The translations under genes were made by a program, and so were the position numbers. Shown in pieces: positions 1 through 54,635 of a stretch of 64,000 nt of DNA. This DNA comes from Perkinsela sp. CCAP 1560/9 (lineage: Eukaryota; Protista; Euglenozoa: Kinetoplastea), in assembly GCA_965644495.1 (NCBI GenBank), contig CBFFSA010000004.1:1-64000 (forward strand), given 5' to 3'. The notes below the pieces were generated by a model, which did no database searches, was not told the origin of the DNA, and was given only the letters and a program-made list of their open reading frames with translations. Positions within the stretch are counted from its first letter, which is position 1. Each line of letters opens with the position of its first letter.

Positions 1-2063
1 ATGGCACTAAATAAAACGGATGGAAAAGCTTTCGAAAAATCTAGAAAACCAATGCACATCCCGTTTCCTCTTAATGCTTTTACTCGTGCTTCGTTGAGAA
101 TCGCCTGGGCTTGCATTGTCGAACGGTCAGGTCTGAACCCACATTGATTATGGCGAAGCACAGGCTCTACATACGGACGAATTCGTTGTAATATTAAACA
201 GTTCATAAGTTTAACAACACAATTTACTAAGCATATGGGCCTTCAATTCTTTAAAAGAGTCAAGTCACCTTTCTTCGGTATCGGAACTTGTAGGACGTCA
301 CCCCAAACTTCCGGAGCCAATCCCGTGTCGTAAACGCGGTTGATAATGCTGAGCAACCACTTTCTAAGATAATCATTATCAACGATGCACGCAAAAGCCT
401 CCATGGGGATTTCATCCTTTCCCGGTGCCTTACCCCTCCCAAAGTGTGAAATTCCGCTTCGAAGCTCTTCCTCAGTGAAAGGGGCGTCCTCAAGTGTGTT
501 TGTTGGAAGATTCGCCTCTAAGAATCTTATATTGTCGTCGCCCCCTGTGTCTCCAGCAAAAGCTTCAAAAAACGTTTTTATCTCCGCCAGCTTCTGTCTG
601 TTTGAGGCCCCCGGTATGTTGAAGTCTGCTCGATCAACTCCACATATTTCTTTTACTGCTCTCCATGGGCTGGCGTGATTTTTCTTCATCTTAGATTCTA
701 GGACTTCACAAGACCTAGTTATAGCATCCTCGATTGCTCCCCTGTTGTGTGATACTAGTTCATTAAAGTCCTTACGCCTTCTGCTTTGCATGAAAATGTT
801 GCGTAGATTATCTGGTTCAGCACCTTGCAATCCTTCAACAGGTGCCTGTATATCAAGAGATATTTTTGTGATTGGTTTCGGAATTTCCTTTCCCGAAGAT
901 CGAAGGCAAGAGGCAAGAAGATCCCAGGAAGGAAGATCTTCTGTATGCAGTTGCGCTGCGACCTGTTCACAAATTCTGTTGTTAAACTTCTCTGCATGTT
1001 CTGGGTTTGATAATTGAAACCAGTGTATTTTCGATCTTTTGATGTTGGACGATATCTTCCATTTGATTCGAATCTCTGCTCGCACAAGAAAGTGTACTGT
1101 CGGCGTAGGAGCGGCAAAAACTTGATGATGTCGCAGAGCTGATGCAAAGCGTGAGCACACTGCAATGTGATCCAACTGGCGTTTAGCATCATTAGGCAAT
1201 ATGCATGTCCATACTCGCTTGCTAGGGCATAAGGAGTGTCCTGATTTGCAATCTATCCCTTCCAAAATCCCCTTCAACCTTTCAACAACAAGTTCGTCTT
1301 CTTCTGTCGTTTTGCCGAAAGTGAGAGGTGCATTTAAGTCCCCAAGTAGAAGTGCGGGTCTTCGAGGGGCTTTGCCTACTGCTTCGTGAAACGCGTTTGT
1401 CAAAGAAATATCAAACTCTTGTTTGGCCTCCTCTGGGGAGTCACGCGTCGGCCCATATGCGTTGAGCATAAAGGCTGACCCTCCTTCGATGTTGAACTCG
1501 CCGGCAATTATCCTATCATTTACTTTCCACGCCTTTATTGGCTCTTGCGTGATGAACCCCATACCGTTATACCCTTTCACTGCAGACATAAGGTAGATGA
1601 AAAAGATTTTATTCCCGTGTCGAAGCTTGCGCTTTAAAATATCAAATCCTTCGCCAGAAGTAAAAGTAAACCTTGTCTCCTGGAGAGCCAGTATATGCAA
1701 GTTGGTTTGTGCCATGTATCGCACAATCTCGTGCAATCGAGCAGAAGCTTTCAGTTTGAAAACGTCGTCACCTTCAAGTTTCAATGATGTCGTATTAAGA
1801 GTGCCTACAGCCAGATACTTCTTCACAGCAGACCCTTTCGGGTCGTCGTCGCGTAGGGCATGCTTGCCACACAGTACCCTAGTTTTCCGTGCTTTTCTAC
1901 GGTTGTTCGAACGCCCAGGTTTTCGAATGCGTGCTCCGCATAACACGATTCGCGAATCATACGGCGGAAAGGGAAGCGTTTCCGATCGCTGGGGTACTTT
2001 ACCCGCCAGCGACCTAGCTGAAAGAGGAAACCAGGCCCTCGTTGAGTTACAGTGCCCTTCCAA
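1..2063 (-). mobile_element. Non-LTR retrotransposon (APE endonuclease + RT, ingi/RTE-like), 5' part, with one in-frame stop; continues beyond window start
   Basis: ORF 243..2063 has APE motifs GTLN, LALQET, NAYGP, LGDLNA, QLDHI and RT domain 0 (KAPGKDEIP, PIPKKGD). After TGA at 243-245 the frame continues RPICL..QCGFRP..FLDFSKAF. Confidence 0.92.
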
Positions 2064-7614: not shown

Positions 7615-10600
7615 AAAAAAACGATACCCTTTTCGCCAGCAAAGCGAAAGGCATCACAAGGTCAGATCTACGCCTTATACAGGCGATACGGGCTGCCAAC
7701 TTACAGGATCGCAGTGGGTCCAAACAAGAACGATAAAAATCTAGCTCTAAGAATCATTACAAATGATGAGAGCGAAAAAATGCAGGAAATGCGGGCCAAC
7801 CTTTCGAACGGCAAATCCGTACTCTTCTTACCAAATTGTACGGAATGTCGAATGTAGATGAGGTAAAGAAGGAACGTGACGTTCTTGAAGGCCTCTTTGG
7901 TCGCCCTCGAGCATTTTTTGGTGTCGTAGAATGCCAGAAACGAGGTGCGCTACACTTTCATAGTGTACTATGGACGAATCTTAGTCCACACTACGTCTCC
8001 GAATTAATTCACATTGTGAAGGAGCACGATGGTCTCGCGAAGTCTTTGAGTACGACGATGCGCTCTGATCTGCACGAGTGGGCGCGAAGGATCAGTAAGG
8101 AGCTTTACGGCCCTGCAACGCTCGACTACTCAAAGATGTATCGCGGAGGACTACATATCATTCCTGATGAAGAGGATGATTATTTCAGGGAACATGTGGC
8201 CAAAAGTGCTGTTGATGTTCAGCAGCACGTTGGTCACAGACCCATGTTTTTAAAAATGAAAGGAAACATAAACAAGAACAAATACCGATATGGCATTCCA
8301 TCCGTACTTCATGAAAATGAAACGGAAGTTGGAGAGGTTGAGGTTCAGATGGATGAATCTGGACAACCGGAATTCCGGCTCAAGCCTCCAACACGGTCGA
8401 TTAAAAATGATGCCATTTGGTCAGTACTTGATGAACGGTCTCTGATTGTGCTTCTGCGCAATAACCATGACCCGACACAAGACACTAAACGGGAATCCAT
8501 CACCGTTCCGTACAATGAAACACTCACTGCTTGCGTAAGATGCAATACATGTGCAGTTTTCATTGGGAGCGAAGGCCCCGGCATAAAAATTATGCAGTAT
8601 CTCATAAAATATATGAGCAAGAACATTGGTCCACCTGTGTACATTGTACCAGCACTTCGCGCAGCCAATGACCACCTTCAAAGGGGTCTGAATTCAGAGC
8701 ACAGAGCGCAAACTGACATTCCGATGGCACGCTTAGTTTTACAGAAATTGTCGAACATGACACATCGAAAGATGGAAGTTTCAATCGAAATGGCAACTGT
8801 CTTTTGTCTCGGCCAACCCTCCGAGTACATGAGCCATAACTTCACATGGATCAATATGAACCGTGTAATGAAGTTCCTGGCAAACATCTCAAGTGAGTTA
8901 GATCACAGATATATAGAAATCAGTGACGATGATTCGTCACAAGACTCCTATATAGAGTTCGACAACGGTATCTTAGAGGCTCCTATAATGATCACCGAAC
9001 ATGATTGTGCAGTTATTGCACCGCTCCATGTGCGTTACATGCACAGGGGCGAAGATCTTCAAGACCTTGAACTGTATTCCTATGCAAGCATTGTCAGCGT
9101 AAAGAAGAAAAGAGCTGAGCTAGCTCAAGAAGAGCCCGATCATGATTCAGATTTTGAGTCAGGGACAAATCGAAGACGTCGTCGCGGACGTCGTGCTAAT
9201 GGGAGATACGCCTTTGAGGAAATTGAGGGCCTCCCGGAATTTGAGCCTGGATATATTGTTAAGCAACAGTTGCGCTCTTTGCACACTGTGCCAGCTATAC
9301 CAGGTTTTCCCATATTGAGTTCTTCAAAAGAACCTGGGACACGAGCTCGAAGCCAGCTTCGAGTAGGGAAACGCATGGTGGCATTGTTTTCCCCATGGAC
9401 GAAAGGCTCACCGAGCCATGAAATGACCCTAGAAGGGTTTGAAAAGCTTCTCAATGAAGCGAAAGTAAATACGCCTGGAAAGTATGACACAATGTGCAAC
9501 TTTCTTCGGCTTTTACATGCTTCTAAGAATACAGAGAACGCGGCAGATTTGTATAACGCAAAGATGCTTGCCATCTAGAAGAAGCAAGATTAGCACGCAA
9601 CATTGTGTACGAAAATGAGCTTGAAGTCCGAGAGGTTGAACCTCATCTTCAAGATGCTCTTGAAGCACAGCAGAACACTGCAGTGGTCAATGAAGAGCGA
9701 TTGGTTCAGCAGAATGCATACTGCGAACTACAAACGTGAACTTTAACGGCCGCGTTAGGAAGTTCTACTGAGAACTCCCCTGAAGAAAATGTTGATCTTG
9801 CATCGACGATGACAAGGACGAGGTCCAATATTTCAGTCATAAATGCGAGAGAGCGCTATGCTGAAATGATTCAAAACGAGCGACTTGCAACTTCGGCTCA
9901 ATCTGAGCCAAGTGCACCAATGGACAGAGCTCATTTTAATGAGGATCGTCCGCTGGCTCGCAGTAATACGACGAGATTACGTTCGATCGCAGCTACATAT
10001 TGCGCGAAGTCAACAGTTCCATTGAACTGAACTATGCACAGAAACAGTGCGTAAATCAAATTGAAAATTTACTAAACGGGAAACTAGACCGCGAGCGGAA
10101 ATGAATGTTTCTGCTCGGTGGCCCCGGAACCGGGAAAAGTCTAGCTTCCCGTTTTATAATGCAAGAACTGGGAAGCCAATGTATTACAATGGCGCCCACT
10201 GGGATCGCCGCATCAGTACTGCACTGTTTCACAATACACGCTTCCCTCTGCATACCGATAGGGGCTACTGCAAGAAATTTGAAACATCTTTCAAGCAGTA
10301 GGCTTCTAAAGGTATGAGAAATGTCGATTAATCATAGTCGACGAAGTGTCAATGATCAGCAAGTGTTTCCTTGCTTGTATCAACACTAGATTGCAGCAAA
10401 TCAAAGGCAATGAGCAGCTCCCCTATGGAGGCATCAACATGCTCTTTTTGGGAGATTTTTATCAGCTGCGACCAGTACAAGGAGCATCTCTTACCATAGA
10501 AGATAGTCCTCCTGGTAATAATCCCATTTTTGGGAATATTTTTCAAGTCTCGCATGTGTTTGAACTCAAACAGCAAATGCGAGCACGACAAGATACTGTA

Positions 10601-11380
10601 TTTTCAGATATCTTGCGTCTTGTTCGAAAAACTCCGAATGAGGGGTTGAAGTTCATCCAATTGGTAAAACCTCTGACCTCTGAGGACCAAGAAAAGTTCC
10701 GCAATGCAATTGTCATTGTTGGAACAAATATTGAACGACACAAGATTAATGTCGCAATGGCAAGAATTTTTGCCAGACGTCACAATTGCCCATTGTTTGC
10801 ATGGACAGGCGATAACGTCCAAGGTAAACTCATTGACACACACCCTGAAGCATTTTCTGTATTTGTAAAAGGAGCACCCGTTGTAATCACGGAGAACATT
10901 GCTCCTTATACATTGAAAATTGCGAATGGGACCGTGATTGAAATGAAAGATCTTGTGTCAGACGATTTGTCATACGACACTATTGATGGTGTTCGTTATC
11001 TAAGAAAAGCCCCTTCTTTTATGCAATGCATTGAGAAGGGGTCAGGAGTAGGGTTTTACGCCAAAAAGGCGCAGCACCATGACAAGACAACCCAAAGAAA
11101 CTTTTAAGTGGAATTGGGATTTGCCTATACGTATCACAAAGTACAAGGTATCACCGTGAAGAAAGGTGTTATTCTTGACTTGAATGATAGGACGTGGTTG
11201 AGGACTCGCCAAGCTCACAGTAGCAATATCCAGGGCACAATGCTTCGGTGATATTCGAGTGCTCCCTGGCATGGGCACAGATCGCCCAGGAACACACCTG
11301 AATTCAGGTTACCATAGGCCTAAATTTCCGGCCATGGAAAAAGCAAATCGGCTTACCGATTTGTCTTATCAATTCTAAGA
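7615..11380 (+). mobile_element. Decayed Helitron (Helitron2/Helentron-like) Rep-helicase
   Basis: Rep: IYALYRRYGLPT, HUH motif VECQKRGALHFH, Y2 motif YLIKYMSK. PIF1 helicase: GGPGTGKS, APTGIAA, IIVDEVSM, GDFYQLRPV, QQMRA, FAYTYHKVQG, VAISR. Broken by stops and frameshifts. Confidence 0.92.
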
Positions 11381-12415: not shown

Positions 12416-13272
12416 AAGGCGAAGATTAATTGACAAAGAAAAGTGATACAGGAAGAAAGTTTTTTTCTTTGTCGAAGAAGTGAATTTCTAAAACGTAGTT
12501 TTCCGGGGTTTTTTCAGTGCACGTTTTCATGTTTTTCTTCTCCACTTTTTCTCCTCTAAAAGCCCATACTGTTCTGTTTAACAAGTAAAGTACTACTCGT
12601 TCTCCAAATCTATATTTTCATTCTCCTAAATTTTCGTTCTCCAAATTGTCCATCGTTCTCCAAATTTTTCTTTTCTAGGCTCTTCGTTAAACGCGGAGGT
12701 AGCTTTCAACGCGAAGCGCGCAGCAGTGGTGCCTTCTAAGTTGAAAACAACCACCGCGTTTAACGAAGAGCCTGGAAAAGAATACAACCACCGCAATAAC
12801 ACATTTATTTTTCTTTTTTAGGCTCTTCGTTAAACGCGGTGGTAGTTTTCAACGTGAAGCGCGCAGCATGAGTGACTTCTAAGTTGGTGATCTCCAAAAG
12901 ATCATGAATAATCTACTTTTTTGGGGGGAAAAGCTCGATTTTTCGGCAACAATTGCGAAATATTACACCGAATTTGGGCCGTTTTGGATGCCCTTAATCT
13001 GTCGACAAAAACGCCGCAGAATGGTAGGTGAGGTCCCAAACTCTCCAAATACGGTTTAGGAGTCGATTTTGGAAAAATAATATTTTTGCTTTTTTCGGAA
13101 TTTTTGACCTTGTCGGACCCCTCCCGCGCGTACCAGGGGGGGGGGTACCCCACTCGCACCTTTATCTGGCATAAAAAGTGGCCCACTTATATTGCATACT
13201 AAGCTGCACCTTTATATTGCATAATTCACCTTTATATGGCATATTAAGCTGCACCTTTATATTGCATAAATT

Positions 13273-13746
13273 CTACACCTTTGTCTGGCATAAAAGTTGA
13301 AAAAAAATCGATAACTTGGTGAGACAGATCTCTCCGGAAAAATTGTTGTTACTCAAGACCATATAGGCTATATTACCTGGAAGCGCAGTGAGGTCAGCCT
13401 TTCCACGAAAAAAATTACCATCAATGCAGAAATTAAGAAGCTTCGGTGGCAGCTCCGTAAAAGGTACCTCACCTTCCAGTCCATTACTGTAGAGTTTTAA
13501 AATAACCAGAGCATGAGGGAGAAATTCCCACCGAAGAATCCCCGAAAGGCGGAATCGATGCCATTCAATTTCAGTAACATGGCCTTCCTCATCGCATGTG
13601 ATTCCACTCCACCTACAAGCGGGAGTGTCTATATTCCATGACGGCCGATGAAGTTTCACGTTTTCAATGAGATGCGCAAGTTGATATTCTGGAGGCGGCA
13701 AGTTTCCTCGCACCTTTGCAGCCTCCAGTGGAATGCTCGTGTTCAT
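13273..13746 (-). pseudogene. 3'-truncated LRR gene (copy of the gene at 25286)
   Basis: 13312-14052 is nearly identical to 25556-26300. It breaks after EICLTKL. Confidence 0.9.
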
Positions 13747-14052
13747 ACGTCTGCTAGGGAAATAAGAAAAGTTGAATGAAGCACATAATTCTTGCATAAA
13801 AACAAGTTGGAAATCGGAAAATCGTAATAAGTCATGTTCCGTGTTAGTAACACGAAAGTAAGGGCGGCAAAGCTCTTCGTTAGGGGAGAGAGACCTCTTG
13901 TTTGCAACAACAATGAGCAAAAACGAAAAAAAAAGAATCAAAATTCCCCACGACGGGGGGGGGGAGGTCAATAACCTCCCCTATACTTACGTATCTCCAT
14001 TGTTTTTTTTGTATATTTTACGTTGCAAAGCCCATCACCGGTAAAGTGACTA

Positions 14053-14948
14053 ATTGCGGTGGTTGTAAAACTACCGCTCTACACTCGATTATTGAAAAAA
14101 AAGTGAACAAAAACAGTGAAAATATAAAGGGGAACACAGTAATATAATAGAAGAAAAAAATATAAAAGGGGGCTCCGGTGGTCCAAAACTGAAAAAAAAA
14201 TTTGAAAAAAATGGGGGGTCCATGGGGGGGGTCCAGGTGGGGGGTCCAGGTGGGGGGTGGCATGGTCGAGCAAATTTTTTCGAAAAAATTAGTTTTCGAA
14301 AAAAAACCGCAGAAAGGGTAGCCGGGGTCTTGGCGCGCATTTTCCACCCCCCTACCCGGGGGTGACCCCCCCGCGTATCCGCAGGACGGGTCCGCCAAGT
14401 TCGGATTTTTTCGGAAAAAAAAATTTGAAAAAAAATTCAACTTAGCTAAAAAAATGACAAAAAAAATATTTTTCCAAAATCGTTTCCCCTATTGTATTTT
14501 GATAGTTTGGGACCTACACTAACTTTCTACGCAGTTGTTTTCGCAAGGTATCACTTCTTCGAACTGTGGTGCGCCCCCGAAAATGACCCATTTTTGACTA
14601 AAAAGGTGAAAAAGTATTTTTCGGACCCCAAGGGTCATTTTAGTGTCGAAAGAATGGTATGGTTGGAGTCGCATTCTCTACCCAATACGTTCGGTAGGCT
14701 TCCATTCATGCCTGCGAGTGATTTCCCACGCGCAAATGTCGGATTTAGTGCTCTGAGAGCAAAAATATGCGAAAATGACCCCATTTTTACCCGAATTTCG
14801 GCTATTTTTGGCTATAATCTTTCCGTTTTCCAGGCTAAATTTTCTTTTTTAGGCTCTTCGTTAAACGCGGCGGTAGTTTTCAACGCGAAGCGCGCAGCAT
14901 GAGTGACTTCTAAGTTGAAAGCAACCACCGCGTTTAACGAAGAGCTTA
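14053..14948 (-). repeat. Full-length R1 repeat
   Basis: Runs from ATTGCGGTGGTTGT to the 98-bp hairpin. Confidence 0.92.
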
Positions 14949-15857
14949 AAAAAGAATTATAAAGGTGCACTATGCAATATAAAGGTGATTATACAATATA
15001 AAGGTGCAGCTTAATATGCAAAATGAAGGTGCCGCTGAATATGCAATATCAAGGTGAATTATGCAATATTAAGGTGCCTTATGCAATATAAAGGTGCATT
15101 ATGCCAGATAAAGGTGAATTCATGCCAGATAAAGGTGAATTCATGCAATATAAAGTGCCACTTTTTATGCAAGATAATGGTGCGGGTGCCTACCCCCAGG
15201 TGGGCGGGTGGAAAGTCATCGCCGCGGCCTACTCTACCACTTCCCTGCGCTCGATTTCGAAAATCAAGATTTTGAAAATTTCAAAAAATGTATATGCCCC
15301 CCCCCCCCTGGACTCCCCATTTTTTTCAATTTTGGACCACCGGGGCCCCCCTTTCAATTTTTTCTTCTATTATATTACAGTGCGTGGTGTTATTACGGGA
15401 CGGGTATTTAAGGGACAATATTGAGGCCACGATTTGTGGCCCGATTTCATGCCCGATATCGCGCCCGATATCGTTTCAGGTGAGTTTTCTAAAAAAAAGT
15501 TTACAAAGACGTATGAATCGAATTGAGTGACAAGATCACTAGTTTTTCAACAATTCCGATGGGTACCCCCTGCCCCCCCTCCCCACCAGGGTGATCATAG
15601 CAATTTCTGAAATCAGAGGAAGGAGGAGGCGCAAGGCACAAAGGCAGAAGGCGTAGCCTTCTGTCCTTTTGCCGCGGCGACGACGACTTCCTCGCGTGGG
15701 AAGCTGTAAGAGGTCCTAGGGAGCATCTTTCGATGGCTCTGTAACCCAGGCTAAAGTGGACGAGGGAGATACTAAAGGCGCCTTTGGCAAACTACCACAA
15801 AACTGGAACGATATCTCCCGGTTTATATATATTTTATATATAAAAAGGGGGCTCCGG

Positions 15858-17051
15858 TATATTTATAAAAGGGGGCTCCGGTGGTCCAAAATTTTAAAAA
15901 AAATTGAAAAAAATGGGGGTCCATCGGGGGGGGGGGCACAAGTCGCTTTTTGAAAATCTTGATTTTCGAAATCGAGCGCAGGGAAGTGGTAGAGTAGGCC
16001 GCGGCGATGACGTTCCACGACCACCACCTGTGTGTACCCCCCCCCCCTGGTACGCGCTGGAGGGGTCCGACAAGGTCAAAAATTCCGAATTTTTTGGGAT
16101 GACCAAAAAAATTTTTTTTGGACCCGGAAAAAAGTAAAAATTTTATTTTTCCAAAATCGACTCCTAAAACGTGTTTTAGGAGTTTGGTTTCTCGAAAAAA
16201 ACCCGCAGCAGCGGTGGCCGGGGTCTTGGCGCGCATTTTCCACCCCCCTACCCGGGGGTGACCCCCCCGCGTATCCGCAGGACGGGTCCGCCAAGTTCGG
16301 ATTTTTTCGGAAAAAAAAATGTGAAAAAATTTCAACTTGGCGAAAAAAATGGCAAAAAAAAATATTTTTCCAAAATCGTTTCCCCTATTGTATTTTGATA
16401 GTTTGGGACCTACACTAGCTTTCTCCGCAGTTGTTTTCGCAAGGTATCACTTCTTGACCCCCCGCGTTCGCCAAGTTCGGATTTTGAAAGAACGGGTCCG
16501 CCAAGTTCGGATTTTTTCGGAAAAAAAATTCAACTTGGCGAAAAAAACGGTAAAAAAAATATTTTTTCAACCTTTTTGCCCTATTGTATTTTGACAGTTT
16601 GGGACCTATACTAGCTTTCTGCGCAGTTGTTTTCGCAAGATATCACTTCGTGGAGCCGTGGCACGCCTCCCACAATAGCCCATTTTTGACCAAAAAGTGC
16701 GAAAAAATAATTTTCGGACCTAATGGGGTCTTTTTATGTCAAAAGAATGGTGTGGTTGGAGTCGCATTCTCTGCCCAATACGTTTAGTAGGCTTTCATTC
16801 ACGCCTACGAGTGATTTTTCACACGCAAATACAAGATTTAGTGCTCTGAGAGCAAGAATACGCAAAAATTACCCCATTTTTATCTGAAAATCGGCTAATT
16901 TTGGCCATAATCCTTGTGTTTTCTTTAGCTTTCCAGGCCGAATTTTCTTTTTTAGGCTCTTCGTTAAACGCGGTGGTAGTTTTCAACGCGGAGCGCGTAG
17001 CATGAGGGACTTCTAAGTTGAAAACAACCACCGCGTTTAACGAAGAGCCTA
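15858..17051 (-). repeat. Rearranged R1 copy with internal duplication
   Basis: R1 blocks with the GCCAAGTTCGGATTTT segment repeated, ending in the 98-bp hairpin. Confidence 0.85.
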
Positions 17052-17518
17052 AAAAAGAAAAGCTTATTTTCAACCCCTTGCAAAAAATTACATTTTTGCT
17101 ACACAGTTAACATAAAAAATGGGTAACCTCGATTGTGCTCCCGGTGAGGCCCCGGAGTTGCGAGAGGCCTCCATACCCCACAACATGTGCATTATGACAG
17201 ATAAGGGTGCATTGTGACAGATACGGGAGCATTTATGACAGATCAGGGTGCGAGTTTCTATGACAGATAAGGGTGCGGGTAGAGTAGGTGGTGGTAGAGT
17301 AGGCCGCGGCGATAATTCCCCCCCGCCCCCCCCCCCCCCTCACACACATGTGGGGGTTACCACTCCCTGTAAACGCGGAGGTAGTTTTCAACGCGAAGCG
17401 CGCAGCTGTGGCCTTGGGGGGAACCACGACTGTATGTTGGATTGCCAAGCGTTGAAACAGAAATGTTGAAAGTCCTAAAAAAGGATAAACAAGCGCACAT
17501 TGAGACCATGTGACTAAG

Positions 17519-24750: not shown

Positions 24751-25285
24751 AGAAGAGGTAAATAAAAAAGGGTTGAAGAGGATCTTTCTTTGTTCTGGTG
24801 TCAAATTATCGAAAGACAACAACGGAGATTTTAGTCACGTAAGGTCTCGGGCAGGCGACTGAGGTTCGGAAACTTCGAACATAGATTACAAACGTTCAGG
24901 AGAGGAGGTAAAAACTCCAAGTCTATTCTGTGTGAAGAATTACCAACGAGAGCTCTATTTTTTCACTGTTTTTGTTCACTTTGTTTCTTCAATAAACGAG
25001 GGTAGAGCGGTAGTTATGTAAAATAACCGCTGCAATAAAGGACACTGAATTACAGGTCGATAAATCCTGTGAATCGAGAGTGAATGAATCTTCAAGATAT
25101 AGTCTTCGAGAATTACAGGACATTTTCAACCTAAAAGGGGATGTGCCTTAATTAACGTGTCGCGTAATTACACTTAATTATAGTAAGTTCCAACCTGTAT
25201 TCCGTATCTCCCTGAATTTTGTTCATGGAACGTTTGTGGGCCCAAGTACGATCGTTAAAGTCTACTTTGATGGCTATGCGTATTG

Positions 25286-25990
25286 TTAAGGAATTACCTT
25301 CTTCACAAGATCCATTACATTTCCTCCCGGAACTCGAAAAGCTTCCTCCTTGAATGCACTGTCTTTAACGTACAGAAACGGGTTACCGTCCAAGCCCAGT
25401 TGACCCATTCCTTTGGGAAGAGAACTCAAGCTGACATGACCACGAAAACGATTGCTATTTAGAAGAAGTGAATTCATTGCGGAAGGAAGGTTTGTTAAAT
25501 CCAACGGCCCACTGAATTGATTGCTAACCAATTCAAGCAAATAAAGAGTTTGAGGTAACTTGGTGAGACAGATCTCTCCGGAAAAATTGTTGTTACTCAA
25601 GACCATATAGGCTATATTACCTGGAAGCGCAGTGAAGTCAGCCTTTCCACGAAAAAAATTACCATCAATGCAGAAATTAAGAAGCTTCGGTGGCAGCTCC
25701 GTAAAAGGTACCTCACCTTCCAGTCCATTACTGTAGAGTTTTAAAATAACCAGAGCATGAGGGAGAAATTCCCACCGAAGAATCCCCGAAAGGCGGAATC
25801 GATGCCATTCAATTTCAGTAACACGGCCTTCCTCATCGCATGTGATTCCACTCCACCTACAAGCGGGAGTGTCTATATTCCATGACGGCCGATGAAGTTT
25901 CACGTTTTCAATGAGATGCGCAAGTTGATATTCTGGAGGCGGCAAGTTTCCTCGCACCTTTGCAGCCTTCAGTGGAATGCTCGTGTTCAT
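25286..25990 (-). CDS. LRR protein, subfamily A
   Basis: ATG at 25990 by alignment to paralogues. W-x4-PAC-x-W-x-G-x-x-C N-cap plus six 23-aa LP-x2-L-x2-L-x-L-x2-N-x-F-x-G repeats. Confidence 0.9.
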   Translation of the reverse strand: MNTSIPLKAAKVRGNLPPPEYQLAHLIENVKLHRPSWNIDTPACRWSGITCDEEGRVTEIEWHRFRLSGILRWEFLPHALVILKLYSNGLEGEVPFTELPPKLLNFCIDGNFFRGKADFTALPGNIAYMVLSNNNFSGEICLTKLPQTLYLLELVSNQFSGPLDLTNLPSAMNSLLLNSNRFRGHVSLSSLPKGMGQLGLDGNPFLYVKDSAFKEEAFRVPGGNVMDLVKKVIP

Positions 25991-26786
25991 ACTTCTGCTA
26001 GGGAAATAAGAAAAGTTGACTGAAGCACGTAATTCTTGCATAAAAACAAGTTGGAAATCGGAAAATCGTAATAAGCCATGTTCCGTGTTAGTAACACGAA
26101 AGTAAGGGCGAAGGCAAAGCTCTTCGCTAGGGGAGAGAGATCTCTTGTTTGCAACAACAATGAGCAAAAACGAAAAACAAAAGAATCAAAATTCCACACG
26201 ACGGGGGGGGGAGGTCAATAACCTCCCCTGTACTTACGTATCTCCATTGTTTTTTTTTGTATATTTTGCGCTGCAAAGCGCATCACCGGTAAAGTGACTA
26301 ATTGAACATTAAAGTGACATTGGAATATTGAAAAGCAAGCTGACATTAATCGGTACCCAGATTACACTTTTTAAGTTTTATGAAGTATTCGCTACGATAT
26401 TACACTTGGATACGTAGCCCCTAACCACCATCCACTGACAGGAAAATCCTTGCAGATGTTTCAGCTTCAGCAACAAAGCCAAGAACAAGGCTCCGCAAGC
26501 TGTCCTATACCACTGTTGAATACTGGGTTAAAAACCTTTCAGAGGTGTATTGGACACAAGAATGGGAGTAAGAAGTTGCACTAAGTTTTGAGGACTCCAT
26601 GGCACCGAAAAACCGCTCGAAAATAACTGAATCATTTTCACATGACACTTCAAAAGTCGCATCTTTACCATTGTGCTTTACAAATTCCTATTCGCCTTCC
26701 AGAACCTTCTTTGCCTCATCTTTTCCTTCCATCCAACCCCATCATCCTCAACAGAATTCATTCTTCCAGATAGCCTCTGTGCTCTC

Positions 26787-52471: not shown

Positions 52472-53182
52472 TTACGGAATTACTTTCCTCACAAGGTCCA
52501 TTACATTTCCTTCCGGAACTTCAAATGCTTTCTCCTTGAATGCACTGTCTTTAATGTACAGAGACGGGTTACTGCCCAAACCCAGACGACTCATTACTTT
52601 GGGGAGAGAACTCAAGCTCACATGACCACAAAACTGATTGTTATTTAGAAAAAGTGAATTCATTGCGGAGGGAAGGTTAGTTAGATCCAACGGCCCACTG
52701 AATCGATTTCTTGCTAAGTTAAGCCAAGAAAGGGTTTGAGGTAACTTAGTGAGACAGATCTCTCCGGAAAAATTGTTGCAACGCAAGACCATATAGGCTA
52801 TAGTATCTGGAAGCGCAGTGAAATCAGCTTTGCTATGAAAAAAATTACCATCCATGTAGAGATGAAGAAGTTTAGGTGGCAGGTCTGTAAAAGGCACCTT
52901 ACCTTCAAGTCTATTGACATTGAGAATAAAAGTATTCAGAGTATGAGGAAGAAATTCCCACTGAAGAGTCCCTGAAAGGAGGAATTGATACCACTTGATT
53001 TCAATAACACGGCCTTCCTCATCGCATGAGATTCCACTCCACTTACAAGCTGGAATCTCCGTACCCCATGAGGGCTGATAACGGTTCACGATGACGTTTT
53101 CAATGAGATGCACAAGTTGATATTCTGGAGGCGGCAAATTCCCTCGCACCTTCGCAGCCTTCAGTGGAATGCTCGTGTTCAT
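52472..53182 (-). CDS. LRR protein, subfamily A
   Basis: Intact 236-aa ORF. Confidence 0.9.
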   Translation of the reverse strand: MNTSIPLKAAKVRGNLPPPEYQLVHLIENVIVNRYQPSWGTEIPACKWSGISCDEEGRVIEIKWYQFLLSGTLQWEFLPHTLNTFILNVNRLEGKVPFTDLPPKLLHLYMDGNFFHSKADFTALPDTIAYMVLRCNNFSGEICLTKLPQTLSWLNLARNRFSGPLDLTNLPSAMNSLFLNNNQFCGHVSLSSLPKVMSRLGLGSNPSLYIKDSAFKEKAFEVPEGNVMDLVRKVIP

Positions 53183-53559: not shown

Positions 53560-54635
53560 TCAGGGTTCGCAGAAACTATAATATAGTAAAATATAGTTTT
53601 TTTCATTGAATATAGTTACTATATAGTACTATATTTACTATATTTTACTATAAAACTATAAGAAAACTATAAAGTTTTTTTCACTTTACAAGTGATATTT
53701 TTTGAGTCCTCTCCGCTTGTGAAGGACATACACACGCCTCTACATGCGTTCTTACACGCTTACATACGTATGATATGACAAGAAATTCTGAAAAAAATGT
53801 AACCCAAGCTAAAGTGGACGAGGGAGGTTCTAAAAGCACCTTTAAACCACCATAAAAATGGAAGGGTATGTCCCTTAAAGATTCTTTTGGCACGTCGGAA
53901 TCCTTTACAAACCGGGAGATATCATTCTATTTTTGTGGTGGTTTAAAGGTGCTTTTAGAACCTCCCTCGTCCACTTTATCCTGGGTTACATAGCTATCGA
54001 AACATGCTCCCTCTTCCCCGCGATTCCATCACCGCCGAAAAATATCATCAACTTGTGTGTCATCTCCTCGGAAATAGCAATGAAACGCATGCGAAAGGAA
54101 TGACGATAGGAAGTACAAACTCTCCACTCGACAACACACCGCGTAATTTATTCAGACTCATATGATTGTATTTATTCAAACTCATAGAATTGTGAGCAGC
54201 AGTTATTCAGTCCCAAGACATAACGTCGGTGGCTCCAGCCAACGCGCGGCGACAGCGATGCAGTGAGAAGATGTTCGGGACGCAAGATTCGCACAAGGCA
54301 ATCTGTCAAGGCCACGCGATGGGACTGGGGTACGTCCCCTCCTGACACAAGTTACATTCAACCGCTTGTTTACTTCCCTCCGTGTGCAGCAGTTCAATAA
54401 AATAATCTTTGCAGAAACTACCCCTCGTAACTTTAATTTCGGGCATCAATTTTCGGGTTTAAAAATAAGAAAAATCGTACACAAATGAATTCGCCGTGTA
54501 TTTATGGCGTGTTGGTGAGCTTCGGAGTGCCTAAAATGTGAAACAAAAAAATATAGTTTTTTATAGTTTTCGAAAAAAGTTTATAGTAACTATATAGTAC
54601 TATATTGATAGTTTTATAGTTTCTGCGAACCCTGG
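53560..54635. mobile_element. hAT-like element with 8-bp TSD and nested foldback MITE
   Basis: TIR CAGGGTTCGCAGAAACTATA, TSD ATTTTTAT. Confidence 0.8.

Follow-up and report, generated by a model that had tools for sequence, protein, structure and literature searches.

What kind of mobile element occupies positions 13148-15190 of Perkinsela sp. contig CBFFSA010000004.1, and how did part of a host LRR gene come to lie inside it? The window, meaning the whole stretch of DNA that was analyzed, comprises 64,000 nt of this contig. All positions are window coordinates, while names such as C48 and C12 denote genome contigs and are given as contig:position. The original prediction was a Pack-type TIR element. 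It holds in describing a non-autonomous TIR transposon, precisely inserted, into which a host LRR gene has been copied in truncated form. Movement after capture finds no support, as the junctions of the cargo are unique. We show that the locus probably belongs to a eukaryotic IS30-like DNA transposon family, as a non-autonomous member whose interior has been replaced. Its parts and the related features of the window are as follows.

13094-13147, forward strand: left flank, a copy of the target repeat ending in a G-run and TA, 98% complementary to 16038-16089
13148-13311, forward strand: L-type arm (TIR), with end motif CCCCACTCGCACC and, inward of it, about 5 units of 20-25 nt
13312-14052, reverse strand: LRR gene fragment, 97.3% identical to the donor at 25556-26304
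14053-14956, forward strand: complete R1 repeat, both ends coinciding with the ends of other R1 copies
14957-15190, reverse strand: R-type arm (TIR), with end motif GGCACCCGCACC read from the outside in, then about 10 units of 20 nt
15191-15278, forward strand: right flank, the same target repeat, beginning with TA and 97% complementary to 15948-16018
15948-16089, reverse strand: paralogous empty site, the repeat uninterrupted, with a single TA at 16035-16036
17136-17285, reverse strand: solo arm of a related subfamily, next to the target repeat and to a further R1 copy
25556-26304, reverse strand: donor segment, consisting of the 5' 62% of an LRR coding sequence and upstream DNA

The element is a discrete 2043-bp insertion within a high-copy repeat, at the TA in the middle of a near-palindrome. 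As originally described, its inverted arms (13148-13311 and 14957-15190) are built of minisatellite. They are about 80% complementary across 120-138 nt and consist of 20-25-nt units (families D2 and D9), with 5 copies in the left arm and 10 in the right. These units are presumably repeated transposase-binding sites. The outermost 39 nt of the two arms match at 31 positions, and the ends of the element are asymmetric (CCACTCGCACC versus GCACCCGCACC). Both arms have relatives elsewhere in the genome. The L-type arm is 93% identical to C10:721803-721964 and 78-85% identical to copies on C1, C70, and C3; its outer 62 nt differ at three positions from a transposase-carrying copy on C70. The R-type arm is 86% identical to C11:156213-156383 and 94-96% identical to C3:735583-735695 and C3:737961-738088, and has the same innermost starting unit as the canonical array on C11. 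The solo arm at 17136-17285 contains a 49-nt motif that is found inside most family members.

Comparison of the filled site with empty paralogs reveals the target. In the filled site, TA stands at 13146-13147 on the left and at 15191-15192 on the right. The flanks are joined by one TA in the empty copy within the window (16035-16036, reverse strand), as the original prediction had read it, and alignment finds the same at more than 20 further sites on 13 contigs. The target sequence is near-palindromic, CCAGGGGGGG-TA-CCCCCAGG. The letters formally allow a duplication of 2 to 6 bp, because the element begins in CCCC and CCCCC also follows in the target; in other copies CCC(C)AC is retained beside unrelated flanks, which favors 2 bp. 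The duplication rests on a single element, the window copy, in which both ends and both flanks could be read. Solo ends elsewhere have flanks that lack a terminal TA, which fits, without proving, an IS30-type duplication that has no sequence specificity. The same position in the same repeat is occupied by a second, different subfamily on C17, making two events in total.

The end motifs of the element belong to a family that is associated with IS30-type transposases. Genome-wide there are 53 occurrences of the same asymmetric motifs, against none in a reversed control; they form inverted pairs of L and R ends spaced 0.4-5.3 kb apart. At C70:21915-22652, inside an L end, lies a transposase that matches the NCBIfam IS30 equivalog model NF033563 with 182 bits (E 1.7e-53), against a model cut-off of 80 bits. 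A short transposase fragment on C9 lies likewise, judged by its coordinates only. Two further contigs have a homologous frame between their ends, again placed by coordinates only:

C48: ends at 541 and 2519, with a homologous IS30-family frame at 1197-1913 between them
C12: ends at 80545 and 83070, with a homologous IS30-family frame at 81944-82507 between them

In C48, C12, and C70, and in the C9 fragment, the transposase is oriented from the R-type end toward the L-type end. IS30-like frames of 328-388 amino acids, without a stop in the matched stretch, are present in the genome, several places having identical scores. An L end is also found at C11:161476-161500. One ORF inside a related copy (C2:843162-843974) matched no Pfam family. 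The usual interior of the family is either a transposase gene, in autonomous copies, or a 190-nt segment with 225-nt tandem repeats, in non-autonomous ones. In the open reading frame list of the window, the interior of the element is free of any transposase ORF.

The usual interior is replaced in the window by a piece of an LRR gene. The copy at 13312-14056, which the original prediction had noticed, aligns with 25556-26304 at 97.3% identity (750 aligned columns, 16 substitutions, and 4 indels), while all other LRR paralogs reach at most 88% and cover the first 435 nt only. Positions 13746-13312 represent the first 145 of the 234 codons of the LRR gene, including an LRRNT_2 motif (E 3e-4 in the captured fragment), and 13747-14052 is about 306 nt of DNA from upstream of that gene. 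The donor gene has its ATG at 25990 and a stop near 25286. The gene is complete, and its homology to paralogs extends to either side of the breakpoint; because that homology spans 25215-25990, the captured fragment begins mid-gene. This indicates that copying proceeded from the donor to the element. Donor and copy share the same orientation and lie 12.4 kb apart in the window. The copied segment does literally start and end at TA (13312-13313 and 14051-14052), as the original prediction had remarked; nothing was found that gives this TA a meaning. The open frame at 13273-13971 (232 amino acids) continues into the arm, where it meets a stop after 13 codons. For the neighboring ClpB-like protein, an exact search returned no match.

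The two boundaries of the LRR copy differ in character. At the arm boundary, sequence switches to LRR at arm position 164. Five other copies have homology that continues inward beyond this position, while the homology of the window L arm ends at 13311. The junction is blunt, with zero shared bases, and a search for microhomology there found none. At the other boundary, the predicted R1 copy proves to be a full-length R1 at 14053-14956. R1 and the LRR copy share a 4-nt overlap (ATTG), and the junction coincides exactly with the first base of R1. The R1 family has hundreds of candidates in the genome (595 at first look), many of them 100% identical over the first 88 nt. It has a terminal hairpin at its 5' end and a 115-nt palindrome at its 3' end, with folding z-scores of -4.6 and -9.6. 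R1 has also inserted, in opposite orientation, into the array of another family member at C3:735692. Since both of its termini are intact and it is found in that second array, R1 would have entered the element as a separate, later insertion. So exact an LRR|R1 junction is unexpected for an independent arrival, unless R1 landed at the boundary between fragment and array.

Together, these observations show an element with L-type and R-type IS30-like ends, its arms expanded into arrays of units, that integrated at the central TA and duplicated it. The normal interior between the arms has been replaced by the 741-745-bp LRR copy together with the complete R1. We infer that the LRR piece was most likely acquired in place, at or after integration, by repair of a break or by template switching, with a nearby sequence as template. 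One junction is blunt, and there is no progenitor copy, which copy-out-paste-in transposition would leave. As the composite has no transposase of its own, it could move only with an enzyme from an intact family member, and there is no sign of movement since the capture.

Alternatively, the LRR fragment, with or without R1, might have been captured elsewhere and the composite then transposed to its present position as a unit, in the manner of a true Pack-type element. The whole 2043-bp unit lies between intact ends, its duplication is clean when set against the empty sites, and the long IS30-like frames described above make it plausible that an enzyme was available. We nevertheless regard this history as unlikely. 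Neither chimeric junction has a second copy in the 21-Mb assembly, although a progenitor should remain after copy-out-paste-in (PMC9333248). Furthermore, the proximity of the donor, only 12.4 kb away and in the same orientation, fits local repair.

A second alternative treats R1 as a putative rolling-circle (Helitron-type) element that once stood upstream of an LRR gene and took along 741 bp of its 5' flank on being copied, with the LRR and R1 sequences then landing jointly in the IS30-like element. The LRR copy stops exactly at the first bases of R1, with the 4-nt overlap and a T|T step in the donor; both ends of R1 carry hairpins; R1 has been active very recently; and weak Helitron-like Rep and PIF1 matches, below Pfam cut-offs, are present at 7836-11104. 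This origin is nonetheless quite doubtful. The donor locus does not have R1, the LRR|R1 junction occurs only once in the genome, and the 5' end of R1 is absent at the Rep-like ORFs. An extra deletion would also be needed, as more than 1 kb separates the two arm boundaries in canonical copies. Replacement in place, followed by a separate arrival of R1, remains our preferred course.

The original prediction took the TA on either side of the insertion as the mark of Tc1/mariner, which would make it a Pack element moved by the abundant Tc1-like transposases of this genome. There are 141 genome matches to a Tc1-like transposase, including two intact copies at 100% identity, and the element end CCCCACTCGCAC loosely resembles the TIR ACCCCTCGACAC of a Tc1 element nested on C11. 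Pack-Mariner elements are known in rice (PMC8903248). However, a TA duplication is not specific to Tc1/mariner, because an IS30-type 2-bp duplication at the same target looks identical, and it is genes for IS30-family transposases that the paired end motifs enclose. The C11 Tc1 ORF (DDE_3), the only one of Tc1/mariner type between such arms, was considered as the autonomous partner and rejected: it has 33-nt TIRs and a TA duplication of its own. As this duplication sits within one array unit, the ORF is a nested guest. Its 100% identical transposase copy at C14:37330 has no such arms nearby, and none were found near eight close relatives. The Tc1/mariner assignment is therefore highly improbable, and we retain the IS30-like one.

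A chimeric mis-join of repeats and LRR locus during assembly is hardly credible: no junction is bridged by any public contig, and contigs of the LRR part show donor letters only (at 13392, 13725, 13749, 13776, 13832, 13880, 13894, 13983, 14020, and 14023), but these contigs are short and have variants dropped, one contig of run X2 matches the window L arm at 13183-13272 without a difference, the rules of transposition are obeyed exactly (the L and R ends are paired, 2 bp are duplicated, and the more than 20 empty sites agree precisely), and copy and donor differ at 20 positions, which counts against a mis-join, whose product would equal its source. The read support consists of short Logan contigs from four runs with variants dropped, and neither confirms nor refutes the assembly.

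The cargo of the IS30-like element does not account for growth of the LRR family. The original prediction had proposed that DNA transposons disperse and truncate LRR genes and so drive their expansion. None of the nine other readable armed loci has a host-gene fragment between its arms, a count that leaves out the interiors/flanks of C48, C12, C1:662764-663711, C2:1100835-1101865, C13:3696-4726, and C5:419761-420180. On contig 4, the eight other places with LRR paralogs all lie away from arms and end motifs. No second copy of either the arm|LRR or the LRR|R1 junction was found in the 21-Mb assembly. The original prediction had itself equated an absence of host sequence from other copies with a one-off rearrangement; the unique junctions, along with the lack of host cargo elsewhere, mark the capture as such. 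It is a single case that offers no explanation of LRR family growth.

The element can be compared with several known systems. Published bacterial IS30 elements transpose by copy-out-paste-in, make a characteristic 2-bp target duplication, and use nearly palindromic hot spots, into whose central 2 bp they insert (PMC9333248). The present family is similar to the bacterial members (E. coli IS30 and ISApl1) in that the transposase of its autonomous relatives passes the NCBIfam IS30 equivalog model, and in that the window copy shows a 2-bp target duplication and integration at the central 2 bp of a near-palindrome. In contrast to the 20-30-bp inverted repeats of bacterial IS30, the arms here measure 164 and 234 nt and hold 5-10 subrepeats of 20-25 nt. 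The ends are also asymmetric, the host is a kinetoplastid-type eukaryotic nucleus, and the window copy lacks a transposase.

Long inverted arms made of short tandem subrepeats are typical of foldback-type elements and of C. elegans Tc7, which are non-coding and depend on transposase in trans. The window element resembles these in its long, inverted arms of short subrepeats. Classical foldback elements generate 8-9-bp duplications. Here, the arms are IS30-like and enclose 1.6 kb of foreign DNA, unlike those of foldback elements and Tc7.

Plant Pack-TYPE elements (Pack-MULE, Pack-CACTA, and Pack-Mariner; PMC8903248, PMC6379663) share with the window element a non-autonomous nature, intact TIR ends, a target duplication, and an interior that holds a host gene fragment with high identity to its donor. 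They differ in superfamily, as IS30-like is absent among those described. The window element is also a single copy in a protist host, for which movement after capture is not seen, and it holds one fragment plus a nested repeat. Plants can form Pack elements from two neighboring insertions (PMC8903248), a route that we considered and rejected for this element, as its arm/cargo junction lies inside the arm region and off the terminus.

Among kinetoplastids, the DNA transposons reported are Merlin elements in two species only, with none in trypanosomatids (PMC8101967, PMC12278014). Merlin occurs in Bodo saltans and Perkinsela, with an IS1595-like transposase and 8-bp duplications (PMC8101967). 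Both Merlin and the present family are DNA transposons of bacterial-IS ancestry in a non-trypanosomatid kinetoplastid. The present family has a different transposase and, in the window copy, a captured gene fragment, whereas Merlin shows no gene capture. Our literature search found no IS30-family element described for any eukaryote.

The locus therefore requires a corrected superfamily call, and the attractive but unsupported idea of LRR expansion is removed. In its place stands unusually clean in-genome evidence that an IS30-type element integrates into a eukaryotic chromosome with the classical IS30 signature. A filled site and more than 20 empty paralogs can be compared within one genome, and reveal the 2-bp duplication and the center of the near-palindrome. 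With a non-autonomous member that carries a host gene fragment, the reach of the "Pack" phenomenon widens to another superfamily and another eukaryotic lineage, both new to it. There is a slim chance that the significance reaches further. The captured LRR module has an intact frame of 232 codons, brings its upstream region with it, and is oriented like the surrounding genes. Conceivably, a bacterial-type IS30 lineage established in this kinetoplastid-type nucleus both transposes there and yields Pack-like derivatives that pick up host gene pieces, and transcription and trans-splicing of the LRR module give a truncated LRR protein. The transposon family would in that case supply new variants to a surface or recognition gene family.

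The element at 13148-15190 combines inverted arms, a copy of an LRR gene fragment and a dispersed repeat. The assembly comprises 21 Mb in 110 contigs, and the window, the first 64 kb of contig 4, opens with 17 kb of repeat mosaic in which the element lies.

Features of the 13148-15190 element
13148-13311, left (L) arm: array of five copies of a 20-25-nt unit, inverted relative to 14957-15190
13312-14056, LRR-derived segment, between the arms: 97.3% identity to 25556-26304
14053-14956, full-length copy of the dispersed repeat R1, between the arms
14957-15190, right (R) arm: array of ten copies of a 20-25-nt unit, inverted relative to 13148-13311

The arms are ~80% complementary over 120-138 nt and agree at 31 of their 39 outermost nucleotides. 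Their tips are unlike: the L arm begins CCCCACTCGCACC, and the R arm, read from outside inward, begins GGCACCCGCACC. Sequence comparison confirmed every part of the structure as first noted, namely the inverted arms, the LRR copy, R1, the TA flanks and the empty site.

The arms point to an IS30-like transposon family. A genome search with the arms matched ~15 loci; the end-motif pattern gives 53 genomic hits, and its reversed control gives 0. The motifs pair in inverted orientation, one L-type (CCACTCGCACC) with one R-type (GCACCCGCACC), at a spacing of 0.4 to 5.3 kb. On contig 70, a 246-aa frame adjoining an L-type arm matches the NCBIfam IS30 equivalog model (E 1.7e-53, 182 bits, cut-off 80); its only Pfam match, to rve, is sub-threshold. 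This protein has 92 genome matches, among them IS30-like frames of 328-388 aa in which the matched stretch is stop-free. At the following loci the gene is oriented from the R-type end to the L-type end.

IS30-like genes associated with the end motifs
Contig 48, 1197-1913, plus strand: IS30-like gene; R end at 541, L end at 2519
Contig 12, 81944-82507, minus strand: IS30-like gene; L end at 80545, R end at 83070
Contig 70: IS30-like gene inside an L end
Contig 9: IS30-like fragment (45 of 246 residues) inside an L end

The window L arm differs from the contig 70 copy at just 3 positions in the outer 62 nt. The arms are therefore the terminal repeats of a family of IS30-like transposons, to which the window copy belongs as a member that lacks a transposase. 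The original prediction of a Pack-type element stands in part: the element is Pack-like, non-autonomous and TIR-bounded, and its donor and an empty site lie in the same window, but its superfamily is IS30-like and not Tc1/mariner.

A Tc1/mariner assignment fails because the end motifs pair around IS30-like genes and the one Tc1-type ORF between such arms is a nested passenger. This intact 332-aa DDE_3 transposase, considered as the autonomous partner and rejected, belongs to a complete 1.33-kb Tc1/mariner element (contig 11, 156383-157712) with its own 33-nt TIRs and its own TA duplication within a single unit of an IS30-like array. It has 141 genome matches in all, including a 100% identical twin (contig 14, 37330-38325) and close relatives without nearby arms. 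Pack-Mariner elements are known from rice (PMC8903248).

The canonical interior of the family has been lost entirely from the window element. In five other copies (contigs 10, 1, 70, 3 and 11), homology passes L-arm position 164 into a common 190-nt segment, beyond which the non-coding contig 11 copy has four 225-nt tandem repeats containing a 49-nt motif. In the window, family sequence ends ...AATCGA and LRR sequence follows directly, with no shared base found at this junction. The R arm begins precisely at the innermost unit of the canonical array.

The insertion is precise, and its site is a near-palindromic target within a high-copy repeat. The 52 nt before 13148 and the 71 nt after 15190 are the two halves of this repeat, of which more than 20 uninterrupted paralogs are spread across 13 contigs. 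The empty paralogs, including window 15948-16089, carry a single TA (...CCAGGGGGGG-TA-CCCCCAGGTGG...), whereas TA flanks the element on both sides at the filled site; this TA is the centre of the palindrome. From the window copy alone, the duplication could be as long as 6 bp, as the element starts CCCC and the target goes on CCCCC. Because CCC(C)AC is retained beside unrelated flanks in other family copies, we count it as element sequence and take the duplication to be 2 bp. IS30 transposes by copy-out-paste-in via circles or dimers, characteristically duplicates 2 bp, and inserts into nearly palindromic hot spots, at their central 2 bp (PMC9333248); the window element agrees in both the 2-bp duplication and the palindrome centre. 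On contig 17 (271300-271774), a different IS30-like end subfamily (units ...CCCTTATAACGCATAAAACTCG) sits in this target repeat too, at the G-run/T(C)A position that the window element uses, and this shared position suggests a genuine preference for the palindromic target. In window 16489-17285, a further R1 copy precedes the 49-nt motif of the family (17136-17184) and a solo arm of R type (17187-17285). This arm also adjoins the target repeat, but at another point within it, and ACTCTACC occurs on either side of that junction.

The LRR segment was clearly copied from gene to element. The donor LRR gene lacks introns, carries an LRRNT_2 motif and lies on the minus strand (ATG at 25990, stop near 25286); it shares 25215-25990 with its paralogs. 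The copy (13312-14056) differs from 25556-26304 by 16 substitutions and 4 indels. It starts mid-gene and extends upstream beyond the paralog homology, holding the first 145 of 234 codons and ~306 nt of 5' flank. A 232-codon open frame is kept, ending 13 codons within the arm; all three substitutions after the ATG change amino acids, too few to inform on selection. Window 13860-13985, corresponding to 26105-26232, is a short dispersed repeat upstream of the LRR gene (>35 genome copies, 75-85% identity). We infer that the fragment was acquired in place, through template switching or break repair, and did not arrive with the element, because copy-out-paste-in transposition leaves a progenitor and none is present, and because the donor has the same orientation and is only 12.4 kb distant.

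R1 would have entered the element independently, after the rest. Both of its termini are intact here: a 9-bp hairpin at the 5' end and a 115-nt palindrome at the 3' end (14050-14077 and 14842-14956; palindrome -42.5 kcal/mol, z -9.6). Over the 5' 88 nt, R1 matches dozens of copies, out of 595 first-look candidates, at 100% identity. Close to the 3' end, ACAACCACCGC is complementary to the 5' tip GCGGTGGTTGT, and the A-rich 3' tail differs in length among copies. The contig 3 family member also has R1 within its array, in the opposite orientation and at another position, which argues for independent later insertion. In contig 70 (21650-21773), a fragment of the R1 3' palindrome interrupts the IS30-like transposase gene within its N-terminal part, so R1 hits this family repeatedly. 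A minority view is that R1 carried the LRR flank along by rolling-circle transduction. The LRR copy does abut R1 exactly, with an ATTG overlap where the donor has a T/T step. The Rep and PIF1-like matches at 7836-11104 fall under Pfam cut-offs, and the R1 5' end was not found there.

Mis-assembly is unlikely, given the 20 differences between LRR copy and donor and the exact agreement of the structure with transposon rules. Among short Logan contigs from one study, from which variants drop out, none bridges a junction; those over the LRR part show the donor's letters, and one from run X2 agrees with the L arm of the window itself at every position of 13183-13272.

Expansion of the LRR family through these elements, as originally proposed, is unsupported. 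Each chimeric junction occurs only once in the genome, and the search for further arm pairs and their cargo revealed no host-gene fragment between the arms of the other members read, which contain tandem repeats or a nested Tc1-like element, a 1.07-kb TIR element or R1. The other LRR paralog places, eight in number, are all on contig 4, and none has an arm or end motif nearby. Several arm-bearing loci have LRR-type ORFs that share the N-terminal motif (..PQEY.LA..I...) within a few kb, with no sign of capture (contig 10, 716824-717441; contig 2, 834345-845702; contig 19, 96000-96860). LRR genes and IS30-like transposons occupy common repeat-rich neighborhoods. A non-coding copy of the 1.07-kb TIR element (window 53561-54634, ends CAGGGTTCGCAGAAACTATAA) has an LRR paralog (52742-53182) at a distance of ~0.4 kb. 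It is 98% identical to contig 11, 158879-159959, where the element is nested within the L arm of an IS30-like element and flanked on both sides by an 8-bp direct repeat (AATTATGC). Its termini and 8-bp duplication look hAT-like.

The host genome is of kinetoplastid type, as indicated by spliced-leader cores and long, intronless frames on a single strand in the window. The conserved 3' core CAGTTTCTGTACCTTGTTGGT with a GT donor occurs 109 times, compared with 0 for the control, and these cores do not form one tandem array but are dispersed across many contigs. Merlin elements are the only DNA transposons reported from Bodo and Perkinsela (PMC8101967), and none are reported from 57 trypanosomatids (PMC12278014). 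A literature search returned nothing relevant on IS30 as a eukaryotic superfamily. For IS30-like elements, this locus supplies empty-site proof of integration, a target palindrome and a captured host gene fragment.
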